A model generated the notes under the pieces. It did not search any database, was not told the DNA's origin, and saw nothing but the letters and a program-made list of their open reading frames with translations. A DNA stretch of 64,000 nucleotides from NCBI GenBank assembly GCA_002189035.1, contig NEEC01000019.1, forward strand, positions 744,001 to 808,000. The letters run 5' to 3'. This document shows positions 19,543-27,100 of the stretch, piece by piece (the first letter of the stretch is position 1; every line of letters begins with the position of its first letter). The translations under genes and the position numbers were made by a program. This stretch comes from Utricularia gibba. Lineage: Eukaryota > Plantae > Magnoliophyta.

Positions 19543-19849
19543 TAGAGATGATTATTAGGGTTAACTGAACCGAAATCAAACTTAATAAGTATATAAATTG
19601 ATAAGCTAAACCGAACCTAATTAAATCGGTTCCATTTCGAATTAACCAACTTAATCGATTTTTTTAAAAAAACATTGTTAAAAACGAAAATACATAAAAT
19701 TTATCTAATTATTTAAAAAAAACGATTAATTTGGTTAATAGTCGAACTAACCGATAACCGATTTATACCAAATTTTAATAATCGAATTTTTCGGTTTCGA
19801 TTCAATTCGACATAGTTCGATTAATTGGTTATTAAACAAAACAGCCCTA
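19543..19849. mobile_element. hAT-type MITE, 307 bp
   Basis: Termini TAGAGATG / CAGCCCTA (reverse complement TAGGGCTG). The 8-bp TSD is CCCACAAC (19535-19542) / CCCACAAG (19850-19857). Multiple AACCGA/TTCGG subterminal repeats. Confidence 0.75.
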
Positions 19850-20159
19850 CCCACAAGTCTTAACCCATGGAATTGAGCATTTGCACTGCATGCGACATTA
19901 CAACAATTCATGCTGCTTTCAAATTATTTTCTTGATATTAATTTCTAAGATTATATTCTTGGAATAGCTTCTGCTTATAAAATTAATATAAGTAGCCTCT
20001 GTCTAGTCAACGGTTTCAGAAACAAGTTAACTTCATCTGCTCTCCTCTGCTGTATCGTCGCCTCCTCCAGGGATATAAAAACGTTCTGTGGAATGGACTG
20101 TCCGGCGGGATGATGCTGTTACCTATTCAACGGTTTCTTGATAGCTGTTTCCCTTCGGA

Positions 20160-22784
20160 ATGGCGTACGCCGCCGTGGTTACGCTATTGCAGGATCTCCA
20201 GGAAATTGTCGAGTTATCTACTCCGGATTCAGCCGTACGACTCCGATTTATTCAGGAAAAGCTTCGGTCGTTGCTAGATTTCCTCGAGGATTCCGTCTCA
20301 GTGACCGAGCGAATTAGAGCCGCCGTTGAGAAAAGAGATGTGGAGAGGGAGATTAGAGATCTGGTTTACCGACTGCAAGATGTATTCGACTTCTTCATTT
20401 CTCAGAAGGAAGAAGATCCAGATGGATGCGAATCACCTTCGTATTTGAATCGAATGGAGCAGATTTTGAACCATCAACTTCCCTCTCTTGAGAAGAGGAT
20501 TTCGCAATTGCAGCAGGAAATCCCGAAGGGTCAGACGGTGCCGCCATTGCAGCAGGAGCCAATTTCCTATCGAGACGGGTCATTGGATGGGAAAAAGCTG
20601 ATCGGATTGGAAAAGGGATTGGATGAACTCCAGAAAAGGCTTTTTGGGCAAGTAAAGGAGCGAGAAATCATTGCTATTGTAGGGATGGGAGGATCGGGAA
20701 AGACAACCCTGGCAACGAGGTTGTACAAAGGTGGGCAAATGAGCAATCACTTTGACAGTGCTGCTTGGATAACAGTATCCCAGGAGTACGATAAGCGAGA
20801 AATCATGCTGCGAATGCTTGAATCCATGGAAATTCTTACTCCGGAAATGCGAGAAGAAGACGACATACGTTTGAACGAACATTTGTACAAACACCTACGA
20901 ACTAGGAGACACTTCATTGTTATGGATGATGTTTGGAGCAAAGATGCTTTTGATGATGTCAAAAATATGCTTCCCGATGACAGGTACAATAGAAGCAGAG
21001 TCTTGATAACCACACGGTTAATGGAGGTGGCCGGATATGCCACTTTGGGAAAGGGCTACTGCCATCAGATGAGGCTGTTGAATGAAGATGAGAGTTGGGA
21101 GCTCTTGTGCACAAGGACTTTCGAGGAGGAAGGAGGGTGCCCTGATCTCCTGGTGGAAACCGGTAAGAAGATTGCCTTTAGCTGCAAAGGACTTCCTCTT
21201 GCTATCGAAGTGATGTCTGGGTATCTCCGGAACAAAGGTAGAGAAAAGCTCATTTGGGAGGAAGTTGCCACCAAAATCAACAAGGACTTGAGCACAAACG
21301 GATTGATGAGGGAGATGGTACGCTTAAGCTATGGTGAATTACCTAACTTCCTGAAACATTGCTTCCTCTACTTCAGCATGTTTGCTGAGGATGAAAAACG
21401 CAATGCTTCCGATCTGGTCAAAATCTGGGAGGCGGAAGGATTTTTAATATCTTTGAGCTGGCTGAGTCCAGAGGAGTTTACCGTAGCATGTTTACAAGCG
21501 CTGAGTTATCGACATCTCGTGACTGCTGAGTATAAATGTGGAAGGATGGAGAGATGCAGCATCCACGATGTTCTGAGGGATCTGTGCTTGGAAATTGCCA
21601 AAGAGGAACAGTTTGCTGCAGCTCTACTCACCCATTCAGATGTGGGACAAAATGACATCAAACAACTCCGCAGGTTAGCTATTCATGGCGATCTTAGCAA
21701 AATGAGAAGCATGATACCACCTGAGGATCTTGTGCTTCTCCGTTCTTTTCGATGCAAAAAACAGCTGACTGAAGATGATCCATCCTCCTATTTGAACTCC
21801 TGCCATCTTCTCAGAGTGGTGGAGTTGCCGACACTGAATTTCTTTGGACATCGGATCGACATGCTGAAGCTTTCCCATTTGCGCTATCTCTCTGCGCCTG
21901 TTAAAAAATGGGTTATACCAGAGCATTTTGCTGATTATTTCTGGAACTTACAATCCTTGATCATGCGTGGGGCTACCGTTGCAGGCACCCAAGTGTTGTG
22001 GAAAATGCCAAGCTTGAGGCACATCTGTTTCGGTTCATCCGACATGAAATGCCCTGAAGATAAGGAGTTGAAGCTACCAAATCTTGAAACACTTCTATAC
22101 ATTAAAGCCTCCAATTGCTCCTCCGAGTTGTTCTCAAGAACTCCAAATCTCGTTAGACTGGGAGTCAAGATGGAAGAGCTGGGCTACAAACCCCTTGAAG
22201 AACAATGGAGTGCATTTTCTGTTGAGAATATCAGCAATTTCCCGAAACTCGAAATCCTCAGACTCAAGCGGCAGGATATTTTGACGTCTGGAGTTCCAAA
22301 TAGTTTCACCCTTCCGGACAGCCTTAAAAGGGTGACACTGAGTGATACTAGGCTCCCATGGGAATCACTCTCTGTCGTTGGGAGGCTGCCTAAACTCGAG
22401 CAGCTGAAACTCTTCCGTGATGCATGTATTGGTGGCACTTGGGTGACCAACGACGAGGAGTTTCAGCTGTTGAAGGTTTTGATTATCAATGGCTCAAATT
22501 TGCGATACTGGGAAACCAGTAGCGATCATTTTCCCCAACTGGTGCATCTAGTTCTATGGGATTGCGTCCTGCTCGAAGAAGTCCCCACTTGTTTCGAAGA
22601 AATCCCTACACTTAGATTCATCCAACTGGATGGTGCTAGTCCTTCCGCCGCAAGAAGGGCCCAGGAACAAGTAGAGAGATTCAGAGACAGTGGAATCCAG
22701 ATTGCTGTGGACGGAGGCAGGGCGGCTTTGCCACTTGAAAGACAAGTATTTGTTTTCTTTCACCCTAATCTCTGTCATATCTGA
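20160..22784 (+). CDS. CC-NB-ARC-LRR resistance protein (R1/RPP13-like clade); unspliced form 874 aa
   Basis: MAYAAVVTLL N-terminus, QDVFD (EDVID-like), P-loop GMGGSGKTTLA, kinase-2 IVMDDVW, RNBS-B SRVLITTR, GLPLA, CFLYFSMF, IHD (MHD variant) and LRRs. Confidence 0.95.
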   Translation: MAYAAVVTLLQDLQEIVELSTPDSAVRLRFIQEKLRSLLDFLEDSVSVTERIRAAVEKRDVEREIRDLVYRLQDVFDFFISQKEEDPDGCESPSYLNRMEQILNHQLPSLEKRISQLQQEIPKGQTVPPLQQEPISYRDGSLDGKKLIGLEKGLDELQKRLFGQVKEREIIAIVGMGGSGKTTLATRLYKGGQMSNHFDSAAWITVSQEYDKREIMLRMLESMEILTPEMREEDDIRLNEHLYKHLRTRRHFIVMDDVWSKDAFDDVKNMLPDDRYNRSRVLITTRLMEVAGYATLGKGYCHQMRLLNEDESWELLCTRTFEEEGGCPDLLVETGKKIAFSCKGLPLAIEVMSGYLRNKGREKLIWEEVATKINKDLSTNGLMREMVRLSYGELPNFLKHCFLYFSMFAEDEKRNASDLVKIWEAEGFLISLSWLSPEEFTVACLQALSYRHLVTAEYKCGRMERCSIHDVLRDLCLEIAKEEQFAAALLTHSDVGQNDIKQLRRLAIHGDLSKMRSMIPPEDLVLLRSFRCKKQLTEDDPSSYLNSCHLLRVVELPTLNFFGHRIDMLKLSHLRYLSAPVKKWVIPEHFADYFWNLQSLIMRGATVAGTQVLWKMPSLRHICFGSSDMKCPEDKELKLPNLETLLYIKASNCSSELFSRTPNLVRLGVKMEELGYKPLEEQWSAFSVENISNFPKLEILRLKRQDILTSGVPNSFTLPDSLKRVTLSDTRLPWESLSVVGRLPKLEQLKLFRDACIGGTWVTNDEEFQLLKVLIINGSNLRYWETSSDHFPQLVHLVLWDCVLLEEVPTCFEEIPTLRFIQLDGASPSAARRAQEQVERFRDSGIQIAVDGGRAALPLERQVFVFFHPNLCHI

Positions 22785-22822
22785 TTGGGAGGAAGTTCTA
22801 GTTTTTTTTCCCCATGCTGCAG

Positions 22823-23285
22823 GTGAGCTCCCTCATGACGATGCTGGAGGATCTCAAGCTCAGATATGGATTGGGTTTTTCACTGTGCCTCCTGCTCCTC
22901 ACTTCCCCTGCAGTGATCATGGTACATGTAACAGAGTACCTGGTGAGAGCCGCCGCCATGACTCCTCATCTCAAGTTATCTGTAAACCATTATCCATTTA
23001 ACTATGGGTTTCATGATGTAGGTGAGGTCCTTGATGGCAGCGTTGAAGGACATCAGGATTAAAATTGCACTGGGTTTTGTTTGGGGGATGCTGCTGATCC
23101 CAATATTTAATCTGCTGGTGGAGATTTTGGTGCACGCGCCGGAGTACCTGCTGAGCTGGTGGCGCCCGGCATCATCAACATCAGCAGGGTTCCAGGCCAT
23201 CCTCACCGGGCTCAAGGTACTACTCTGGTTGAATTTGGTAGCGATGATCTACATCAGAATGCTCATTCGCCCTTCCTTCCTTTGA
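22823..23285 (+). CDS. Predicted extra NLR 3' exons (22823-22942, 23022-23285) encoding a duplicated hydrophobic module; spliced product 989 aa
   Basis: Phase-0 donor CAA|GTATTT at 22746, acceptor TGCAG| at 22822, donor CTG|GTGAGA at 22943 and acceptor TGTAG| at 23021. The introns are 77 and 79 bp, and both exons are open in the NLR frame. Confidence 0.6.
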
Positions 23286-24131
23286 CAGCAAATATGTGAA
23301 ACACAACCAAAATCTAATGAGAAAATTGTAAGAATAACATTTCAAGTTTTAATTAATACAAAGAGTTTAATTTTAAGTTTTAAAATTGTAGAAGGAAAAT
23401 ATTTTAAGCTAGCAAAACTGTTCAATGATGAATCAATCGATTTTTAAATTTTTAAAAAATTAACTGGTTTACATCATGGTAAACCAACTCTGATTTCAAA
23501 CATAATAAAATTTTATGGTAAAGTTTTTTACCTTCAAGTTTTGATGAATAGAATGATATACTTAATAAAGTTAAATCACATTTATATCTTGTATGATTCT
23601 AAGTGATAATAATTATATCATATTTATGTTTCATATGATTTAAAATGATAATGATTATATTGGATCTCGTATGATATATTATTATGATGATGTTAAGGTT
23701 GACACCTATTAATTTTGATATTATGAAATATTAAATATATAATTTTATAAATTTTAAAATAAACTATTTATAGAAAAACAATTTGATGTAATTATAACGT
23801 AATTTCGAAACTTAAAAATTAAGCTCTTTATATTGTTTGTGAATTGAAGTTGATAAAATTCAATATAATTATCATGACACCAAAATTTATTATCTCATGA
23901 ATTTATTAATGCTTTTTAATTAAAACAAAATTCTTGTAAAGGTGCTGATGGAGGGAGAGGTCACGTGCGTGCGTGCGCCTATCCGAGGGGTGCATCTGGG
24001 CCCCATCTTATTCCCCTCTCCGTCATCCTCCTCAACGGCGGCCACTCCGCAACGGATAAAACAAAATTGACGGAGCGGACAAGTATATTTCGGTTCTCAA
24101 GTGGGAGGAGTAGTTTCACGATTTCGTGGAG

Positions 24132-27100
24132 ATGGGGAGCGAGGCTCCTTACAAGTCGCTCGACTGCATAACCGCTGCCGATATCACGGCGCTAGGCATT
24201 CCGATGAGCATCGCGGCTGAACTGCACCTTCAGCTTCATCGGATTATCAGTGTTTCTGGCGCTGGAACTCCGGAAACGTGGCGGAGCATATCGAAGGACC
24301 TCCTGACGCCGGAACTTCCGTTTTCTTGCCATCAAATGATGTACTATGGCTGCTACAAGAACTTCGGCCCTGATCCTCCTGCTTGGCTTCCTGATCCGTG
24401 AGTTTAAAAACCCGCGCTGTATTTTTCTTTTCCTCCGTTACTCATTTTGATTCAGTGTTTGAATGCAGTGATAGCGTTTATTCGACTAACGTTGGCAAGT
24501 TGCTGAAGGAGCATGGGAGAGAGCTTCTTGGATCAAAATATGTGGATCCTATTTCAAGCTTTCTTGATTTACAGGAACTTTCTGTTTTGAATCCTGAGGT
24601 TGGGGCACAATTTTCAATCTTCATGGCAATGAGAGTAGTTAGTGATACTGATGTAACTTTCTGTTTGCTTCTTAGGTGTACTGGAAAACCATATTAGAAA
24701 AAATAAATGTTTCCTTCTCGATTGCCCCTACATGTATTTTGCGTGAGGATCCTGATCTCCCCGGTGGTCATTGGCTTCCTGGTGCGACTACTAACCCAGC
24801 GAAAAATTGTTTGAATTTAAGTGGTAAGAGGACCCTCGAAAGTGTTGCTGTCCTATGGCGTGACGAAGGAGATGATGAAGCTCCAGTGAATAAGATGACT
24901 CTGAACGAGTTACGCACGTCGGTCTGGTAATGCATTTGTTTTCGAGTTTGAAGAAATTGTTTTTTCCTGAAGTTTTTGAACGCCCAAAATTGAAGATATT
25001 GCTGTGGTAAATGGGAATTTTTTTTTGGAAATTGTATTATAGGCGGGTTGCTTTTGCAATAGAAGCTCTGAATCTGGAAAAAGGATCTGCAATTGCTATA
25101 TGTATGCCCATGGATGTTGACTCTGTTTTAGTATACCTTGCAATAGTACTTGCTGGTTATGTAGTAGTATCAGTTGCTGATAGCTTTGCACCAGCTGAAA
25201 TATCAGTTAGACTCCGGATATCAAATGCAAAAGCAATTTTTACCAAGGTAATTATCCGGTTTTTTCTTTTTGCTGAAGGAATACTGCATCTTAATATTGA
25301 TTCGGGATCATTCCATTCTTCATGAAAAAAAATTGTGTTTTTTTTATATGAAAGTTATGAATATATCAGATTAGTGTGTTCAAACTTGAAACACTGTGCT
25401 TTTGAATGCTTTATACCATTAGACTTTTGCCTTCCTGTAGTAAAACCCTTTTTGATTTGTCATCCCCATTTATCCATTTCTACAATCTTTCTGGTCCTAT
25501 TCCATTGGAAAATGGCACTGGACCTTTTACGTTATCTTAAAAGAAGGCCTTAAAGAGGATTGGTTTTTTTTTTTTTCAATTTTATTTTTCAGGATCTCAT
25601 TATCCGTGGTGATAAAAAGATTCCATTGTACAGGTGATGCTCCCTTCAGGTTCTTTCTGTTATGTTTAAGTGCTTTCTCGCTGCTGCATTATAGCAATAC
25701 CTGTGTAAGTGCTACTCACATCTTTTTGTTTGAGCTCTGCAGGAGAATTGCAGAGGCTCAGTCACCAAAAGCAATTGTAATTCCTACAAATGGGTTCAGT
25801 TTCAGCATGGGATTGCGTGATAGCGATGTTTCCTGGCAATCTTTTCTCGAGGGTGCCAATGAATGCAAGTGAGGATGTTAATGAACTATATTAAGAGTTT
25901 TACATTTGATTTTGTGTGTAAAGTCTATTCCCTGCTTTAGCTGGTACGCCAATTATATGAGTGAGTCATTAAGCTTATCTGAATTGCTCTTAACTATCAG
26001 TAATTTTTGAATCACTGATGAGCAGATTGATGACCAGCATGGCAATTCTTTTGTTTTTTTTTTGTCAGGATCTTGTGATGCTCTTGACCTGATATAAAAT
26101 ATACTAATTGCAGGGACGTTGAGTTCATTGCCATAGAGCAACCCACTGATGCGATGACAAACATATTATTCTCATCAGGAACTACAGGTATATTAATGGA
26201 ATATGGCTTTTTTAGGATTTTGACAAAGATTGGTAGTCGAAGATATCGAAACTTACATTGCTTTTTGTCTTGAAAGTATGCGGCTGAGAAATTCCCACAT
26301 TAGTCATGACCTGAAAATTGGGCTGATCAAAGTTTATTACTCAGGGGAGCCAAAGGCAATCCCGTGGACTACTATTACACCCTTTAAGACTGCTGCTGAT
26401 GGTTGGTGCAACATGGACATTCAGGAAGGTGATGTAGTTGCTTGGTCAACTAATCTTGGTTGGATGATGGGCCCCTGGCTTCTCTATGCGTCATTACTGA
26501 ACAGAGCTTCAATTGCTCTTTATAATGGATCCCCTCTTGGTTCTGGCTTTGCTAAGTTTGTGCAGGTGAATATTTGCCTCTTCTTTTTTCTTCGGTGGAT
26601 TTACTGCTGAAGAATATTGGTCAAAATGGCATGCAAAGGATGGCTTTTGTTGAAATATTTGTTTCCACGTCATGGAAAAAAGAAATACTTTGCTGCCTGT
26701 GTGGATTTTTGTGGTATTTTTGCATTGTTAACTCATAATTTGGTTTAGGGTTTTATTATTTAATACTTAATTGCTTGCCATCCAAATGCAAATTTTAAGG
26801 ATGCCAAAGTGACAATGTTGGGTGTCATCCCTAGCATTGTGAGGGCGTGGAAAAGTACAAATTCAGTATCTGCAGATTGGTCATCTATCCGGTGGGTAAA
26901 ACTTGTATGCGATGTTTTTTTTAGAATCTTGCACTGCATTAGTATTTACACACCTTCTTGTGACATGGAAGGATTAGGAAGAAAATTCAGCTGCAGTTTC
27001 TGTTGTCTGCTTATCCATGCATCTTTTAACTAATTAATGAATTAACTTTCTTTAGTTGCTTTGCATCCACTGGCGAGGCATCGAATGTAGATGAGTACCT

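Follow-up and report, generated by a model that had tools for sequence, protein, structure and literature searches.

We analysed a window of 64,000 nucleotides from Utricularia gibba (the whole stretch of contig NEEC01000019.1, assembly GCA_002189035.1, from position 744,001 to 808,000), which carries a nucleotide-binding leucine-rich repeat receptor (NLR) gene with an unusual 3' end; coordinates below count from the first letter of the window, and all features of the gene lie on the forward strand. This is a single gene, the main mRNA of which encodes a 989-aa coiled-coil (CC)-NB-ARC-leucine-rich repeat (LRR) protein with a 127-residue, three-helix extension past the normal LRR end, the helices being long and of moderate hydrophobicity. 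The mRNA consists of a 5' leader (20037 to 20159, as given by contig starts at 20037, 20040, and 20106 together with the sequence and the list of open reading frames (ORFs)), exon 1 (20160 to 22745), which encodes the complete CC-NB-ARC-LRR receptor in 862 codons, exon 2 (22823 to 22942; 40 codons), exon 3 (23022 to 23285; 87 codons and the TGA at 23283-85), and a short 3' untranslated region (UTR; 23286 to 23362, with contig ends at 23307-23362). The exons are separated by intron 1 (22746 to 22822; 77 nt, GT..AG, phase 0) and intron 2 (22943 to 23021; 79 nt, GT..AG). The ORF that starts at 20160 is in phase 0 when it reaches the GT donor at 22746, and exons 2 and 3 together add 127 codons in frame. 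When intron 1 is retained, the reading frame meets a stop at 22782-22784, and the product is 874 aa long. A first-pass annotation of the letters had proposed these exons, introns, and product lengths, and all of its coordinates and arithmetic proved correct when we rechecked them against the sequence.

By its sequence, the product of exon 1 is a plant CC-NB-ARC-LRR receptor (CNL) of the R1/Rx type, in which the NB-ARC, the LRR, and the coiled coil can each be recognised. Against Pfam, exon 1 matched NB-ARC (E=4.7e-55) and WH_DRP (1.9e-09); matches to LRR_14 (7e-07, 28.8 bits, with a cut-off of 40), Rx_N (0.02, 15.4 bits, with a cut-off of 27.7), and LRR_R13L1-DRL21 lay below the curated cut-offs. 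A profile made from the first 150 residues of 88 relatives matched residues 1-123 (20160-20528) at 4.4e-16, and the NB-ARC motifs are intact in the translation, namely the P-loop (GMGGSGKTT), kinase-2 (FIVMDDVW), GLPLAI, and an MHD-type IHD. The nearest relatives are CNLs of the R1, Rx, Gpa2, and Rpi-amr1 type from Lamiales and Solanaceae, with an identity of just 30-46%; no orthologue of the NLR was found in the databases searched, and exact look-ups of five proteins of the window found no identical entry in the protein collection. The LRR of exon 1 closes with the customary ...SAARRAQEQVERFRDSGIQIAVDG. Because the relatives stop a few residues past their ...IQEEQ...LQVQI motif, and the matching point here is ...AQEQVERFRDSGIQIAVDG, the donor at 22746 is located at the end of the ancestral ORF. 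Further, a tblastn search with the NLR found itself alone in the 64-kb window, so that any second or partner NLR would have to lie beyond it.

We aligned transcriptome contigs of four runs from the same organism, X1-X3 (study P1) and X5 (study P2), to positions 19800-24800. Both joints, 22745^22823 and 22942^23022, are present with GT..AG ends in contigs of all four runs from the two studies (the second was given by the tool as 22941^23021, which is the same joint within a 6-letter ambiguity), and the contigs are colinear with the window across the whole of exon 1. A single contig of 3101 nt (record 11 of X3) joins 20106-22745, 22823-22941, and 23021-23362 and thus represents the spliced mRNA in full. 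No depth was recorded before ~20037 (19800-19966) or across 23474-23974, and the introns of the neighbouring gene are also spliced out in the contigs, which indicates that the contigs are transcripts and not genomic DNA. The first-pass annotation had predicted splicing at these two joints, had expected both a spliced and an intron-retaining form, and had placed the module in the NLR transcript and not in an independent gene; the contigs bear out all three. A separate downstream gene for the module is ruled out, since no contig links the module to the next gene and the intervening depth is zero. A second search of runs, which could have revealed orthologues, turned up exon 3 in this organism alone, namely in additional RNA runs (studies P1 and P3) as well as in some DNA runs. 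The fusion is therefore an NLR with an integrated domain (NLR-ID) in the structural sense, i.e. an extra module in the same transcript and frame up to 23285.

Contigs of 135 nt that retain intron 1 (22718-22852) were seen in X1, X2, and X5 at depths of 4.6-5.2; where contigs break at 22823, the assembly graph forms a bubble between the retained and spliced paths. The depths of the spliced and retained paths were 8.8/4.6, 15.7/5.2, and 30.4/5.2 in X1, X2, and X5, and X3 had no retained path; by contig depth, which is a rough measure, the spliced share across the four libraries is ~66%, 75%, 85%, and 100%. The spliced 989-aa form is thus the major one and the intron-1-retaining 874-aa form the minor one. 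Retention of intron 2 was not seen among the contigs listed, and the depth arithmetic leaves no space for such a form. Under the 50-55 nt rule, an mRNA whose stop lies farther than this upstream of a spliced junction is a predicted substrate of nonsense-mediated decay (NMD). With 158 nt between the stop in the retained intron and the exon 2/exon 3 junction downstream of it, the intron-1-retaining mRNA is predicted to be such a substrate. We infer that this mRNA is a minor by-product; it is possible that a soluble 874-aa receptor is made from it.

The extension has the properties of a coding sequence. Because the spliced mRNA has no stop before 23283, the tail must be read by ribosomes. No in-frame stop occurs over the 127 codons, whereas the two remaining forward frames contain 12 and 2, and only 0.3% of shuffled versions of the 381 nt remain open. 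The GC content at the three codon positions is 0.50/0.36/0.68 in the module and 0.53/0.36/0.50 in the NLR, i.e. the same pattern with a higher value at the third position (GC3) in the module, and the codon-usage log-likelihood, trained on the NLR, is +18 in frame 0 compared with -36 and -1 in the others. Overall GC content is 0.51 in the module (0.515 in exon 3) and falls to 0.195 in the spacer that starts right after the stop. This argues that the extension behaves like coding sequence and not like accidental read-on. A known product in another frame or on the opposite strand was also considered and rejected, as five alternative ORFs found no match in Pfam.

The extension arose when an exon unit of ~200 bp was duplicated in tandem and in frame. 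Exon 2 and codons 1-43 of exon 3 are the two diverged copies (39.5% identity by tblastn, E=4.6e-05 within the window), and the DNA alignment places the two copies one 9-nt in-frame indel apart. Similarity between the copies begins ~10 nt before each acceptor, with CATG.TG.AG ahead of the splice site and GTGAG.TCC after it, and extends to GAGTACCTG followed by GTGAG, which is the exon 2 donor; the exon 3 counterpart, GAGTACCTGCTGAG, is read through. Tandem Repeats Finder did not detect this ~200-bp duplication, the copies being too diverged. In a Nei-Gojobori comparison of exons 2 and 3, the proportion of synonymous differences (pS) was 0.62, which is near saturation, and that of non-synonymous differences (pN) was 0.34 (Fisher p=0.005); amino-acid-changing differences are thus fewer than silent ones. 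When we simulated neutral divergence with an equal number of differences, 1.8% of the simulations reached a ratio so low, and 27% left both copies open. We take this to suggest that the duplication is old and that both copies evolved under protein-level constraint. There is also a candidate third partial unit at 23236-23260, which matches 23035-23059 at 19/25 nt and lies +201 nt (67 codons, in frame) from the start of unit 2; it aligns MAALKDIRI with VAMIYIRM and is too short and weak to separate from chance. The notion that the starts of exons 2 and 3 (V.SLM..L.D) are copies of the N terminus of the clade (MAYAAV.SLM.TLE.) was rejected by a profile test, in which the 88 N termini searched against the window in six frames found the true start alone, with exons 2 and 3 outside the top 15.

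Differences between accessions may point the same way. Compared with the window, accession X5 has 42 differences in the NLR exon (1.6%; span 20291-22532), many of them in the LRR; the 40 differences that are listed hit 36 codons, 18 synonymously and 18 non-synonymously, with a rate of synonymous change (dS) of ~0.03. X5 covers ~310 nt of the two added exons, in which at most 1 difference was found; a neutral module would be expected to show ~10, and one that changes at the pace of the NLR ~5. The low polymorphism is suggestive of constraint on the module. As a separate observation, runs X6, X8, and X20-X23 (studies P3 and P5) contained just 0.56-0.59 of the sampled words of 23022-23300, which indicates that exon 3 or its 3' UTR is variant in some accessions.

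The first-pass annotation could not assign the module to any family, and our searches agree. The module had no match in Pfam and NCBIfam, in PDB sequences, among 1.84 billion protein representatives searched with HMMER at E<=1e-3, among proteins of 48-152 aa in a word-indexed set of 5.8 billion proteins, or in metagenome contigs queried with the module and the LRR end. Fold clusters of the AlphaFold database (AFDB), searched with the exon 3 model, returned generic hairpins alone, all with E>1, and the best matches in the ESM Atlas were generic small bacterial membrane proteins with a score of 0.83, at a recognition below threshold, as for a shuffled sequence. A hydrophobic query of 87 residues is weak in such large libraries, and relatives of less than ~40% identity may escape it. 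By tblastn, no free-standing homologue of the module was found elsewhere in the window, and the 127-aa extension is absent from all 141 related NLRs fetched. Three of the 141 models (P0011, P0075, and P0126) end in unrelated hydrophobic tails after a normal LRR end; these tails may have arisen in annotation, by reading on into T-rich DNA, or may have been gained independently.

The alternative that fares best is that the tail is neutral or mildly harmful read-on, i.e. that two introns in a former 3' UTR skip the ancestral stop and give a tail without a selected role, at most a degradation signal that cuts the receptor level. That the module is an orphan in every search would fit this explanation, as would the facts that the ends of homologous NLRs fall only a few residues from the donor, that the retained-intron stop is at the expected site of the ancestral stop, and that the few unrelated NLR models noted above also have hydrophobic tails. 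However, the duplicated units have come close to synonymous saturation with all 127 codons still open, pN is lower than pS (p ~0.005-0.02), and X5 differs far less from the window in the module than in the NLR. Further, the module displays a codon-position GC structure with a GC3 above that of the NLR, and its GC content of 0.51 contrasts with 0.20 in the adjoining DNA that is truly non-coding. We therefore regard read-on as unlikely.

The hydrophobic character of the module suggests what the extension might do. The three hydrophobic stretches quoted in the first-pass annotation are all there, with Kyte-Doolittle (KD) maxima over 19 residues of 2.11, 2.28, and 1.98. Exon 2 begins with a charged or amphipathic segment, VSSLMTMLEDLKLRY, after which comes hydrophobic helix 1 (22868-22924; KD 2.11), and exon 3 contains hydrophobic helices 2 (23064-23120; KD 2.28) and 3 (23199-23255; KD 1.98), which are linked by a loop with ...EYLLSWWRPASSTSAG... 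On the Hessa scale, the approximate insertion free energies of the exon 3 helices are 0.26 and 1.29 kcal/mol, and those of all three helices ~0.3-1.3, compared with at least 7.6 for every window of the NLR. A single-sequence AlphaFold2 (AF2) model of exon 3 alone has helices at residues 2-45 and 53-82, i.e. a two-helix hairpin, with a mean predicted local distance difference test (pLDDT) score of 73.7. The three helices are thus plausible but borderline membrane helices, and the number of predicted spans is 2 or 3. The last hydrophobic helix stops 9 residues short of the C terminus; the module is not a tail anchor as usually defined (a single transmembrane (TM) helix within ~30 residues of the C terminus), as it has three hydrophobic segments of which the last alone is near the C terminus.

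Overall, we consider it probable that the extension tethers a sensor CNL to a membrane by its LRR end, either as a C-terminal hairpin or with all three helices. In this model, the lineage-restricted extension would act as a membrane tether, helices 2 and 3 of exon 3 most likely inserting as a hairpin with both ends cytosolic. Such a topology would fit the positive-inside rule, and only the short WWRPASS loop would need to cross the membrane. Helix 1 of exon 2 would be peripheral or else span the membrane as well. In this way, a sensor NLR of the R1/Rx type that would otherwise be cytosolic would be held on an endomembrane or the plasma membrane, and the retained-intron mRNA could give a soluble 874-aa receptor, though it is a predicted NMD substrate. 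It seems quite doubtful to us that we can go further and say that an orphan module kept by purifying selection, as the comparison of the copies suggests, either places the receptor on a specific membrane, as a new means to guard effector targets located there, or perturbs the membrane on oligomerisation, as a second output at the C terminus. In both cases, the receptor would be a plant NLR that is integrated into a membrane at its C terminus, a class without a functional description so far.

Several points weigh against the tether. First, the predicted membrane helices come from hydrophobicity scales applied by hand, each hydrophobic helix has a Pro or a polar or charged residue, and the insertion energies are borderline. 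Second, three spans with a cytosolic NLR would break the positive-inside rule, with 6 Lys or Arg residues outside and 3-4 inside. Third, the conservation is deduced from one 40-codon paralogous comparison and one accession, and local genealogy alone could give the low polymorphism of the module. Finally, the type of the runs as RNA is a guess of the tool, the contigs are unstranded, and the depths taken from them are rough.

A second alternative, a regulated localisation switch, concerns the two isoforms: the ratio of spliced (membrane) to retained (soluble) form would be controlled, e.g. by infection, and both proteins would be functional. Both mRNA forms do exist, their ratio varies by library, and alternative inclusion of TM helices has been described for wheat NLR-IDs (PMC7422411). 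Against this, the retained form is the minority in every library and, with its stop far upstream of a spliced junction, a predicted NMD substrate, and the depths of contigs of 58-135 nt are noisy. Further, intron retention is the commonest incomplete processing in plants. A switch of this kind thus seems quite unlikely.

It is also conceivable that the module is an integrated decoy, the main idea of the first-pass annotation, in which the tail mimics a small host membrane protein targeted by effectors and its binding or modification activates the receptor. The site after the LRR is a common one for integrated domains of NLRs, and the fusion is transcribed. However, no free-standing homologue was found among the proteins of 48-152 aa, the 1.84 billion representatives, or in the window, no partner NLR is located within the 64-kb window, and decoy domains normally stay recognisably similar to their parent family. 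Because no parent family was found in these searches, the module does not qualify as a decoy, and we consider this explanation very unlikely. Finally, that the clustered C-terminal helices are a membrane-damaging effector, perturbing the membrane on receptor oligomerisation by analogy with the TM effectors of bacterial STAND, CBASS, and Pycsar systems, is suggested by architecture alone (short hydrophobic helices with internal polar or charged residues (K, N, E) on an oligomerising NTPase) and would appear highly improbable, given that no homology to such an effector was found in Pfam or NCBIfam (PADLOC was not part of the search), that the N-terminal CC domain is intact, and that R1/Rx-type sensors normally signal via helper NLRs.

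The DNA around the gene has some features of its own. The leader contains two upstream ORFs (uORFs), one of 6 codons that starts at 20093 and one of 55 codons (20110-20277) that overlaps the main ATG (20160) out of frame; they may exert translational control of the receptor. An inverted repeat (19641-19739) with 31-nt arms that are 90% complementary and a 37-nt spacer precedes the start of the NLR transcript by ~300 nt; the DNA around it is AT-rich and has many aaccga/tcggtt motifs, and the repeat may be an insertion resembling a miniature inverted-repeat transposable element (MITE) in the promoter. The AT-rich spacer (~700 bp) after the NLR is not transcribed, and the next gene is seen from ~24005-24103, with its start at ~24126 and its first introns at 24398-24468 and 24597-24673; introns in the locus and this neighbour are 71-79 nt long. 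Within the 5' leader of this next gene, the RNA contigs of X1-X3 have one G after 24102 that the window lacks; this is a 1-nt assembly error or a polymorphism.

In the usual view, plant NLRs are cytosolic receptors, either soluble or anchored by lipids, and the domains integrated into them are soluble decoys. If the tail inserts, the receptor would be a tractable model for the consequences that membrane attachment of the LRR end has for recognition, oligomerisation, and helper signalling. The locus also shows a route to new coding exons at the 3' ends of NLR genes, by duplication of an exon unit together with skipping of the old stop. Standard pipelines based on ORFs or NLR annotation would stop the gene at 874 aa and miss the tail.

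In comparison with known systems, the receptor part resembles the R1/Rx-type CC-NLRs of asterids (late blight R1 homologues, Rx, Gpa2, and Rpi-amr1) in its MAYAA... N terminus, its NB-ARC motifs, its winged helix, its LRR, and its ending of the ...SA.KIQEEQ...LQVQI type, but identity is 30-46%, and the hydrophobic 127-aa extension is missing from all 141 relatives fetched. Other NLRs are directed to membranes by N-terminal signals, namely the signal anchors of flax L6 and M and the acylation of RPS5, RPM1, and Tm-2-2. For Tm-2-2, localisation at the plasma membrane has been described (PMC7205312). The likeness to L6, M, RPS5, RPM1, and Tm-2-2 would be an intracellular immune receptor on a membrane; in these, the anchor or lipidation is N-terminal, whereas the anchor proposed here is C-terminal, past the LRR, and of several helices. 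Tail-anchored and C-terminal hairpin proteins share with the 989-aa product a big cytosolic domain followed by hydrophobic helices at the extreme C terminus, but classical tail anchors have one TM helix, and the module here has three hydrophobic helices over 127 residues. The nearest parallel to the fusion itself is found in wheat, in which Andersen et al. (2020; PMC7422411) described NLR-ID models with predicted TM helices that one transcript encodes and another lacks, i.e. a TM-helix module fused to an NLR, with transcripts that do and do not include it. The novelty implied in the first-pass annotation is therefore smaller than it seemed, as TM helices toggled by splicing were already known from these wheat models (PMC7422411). 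The wheat work is a survey of gene models in a monocot; in the U. gibba gene, by contrast, the predicted TM module is the entire integrated part, belongs to no family, is encoded by two mini-exons, is present in the dominant isoform, and has signs of purifying selection. What is new is an orphan module that is verified in transcripts, is located at the C terminus with several helices, is carried by the dominant isoform, and bears signs of purifying selection.

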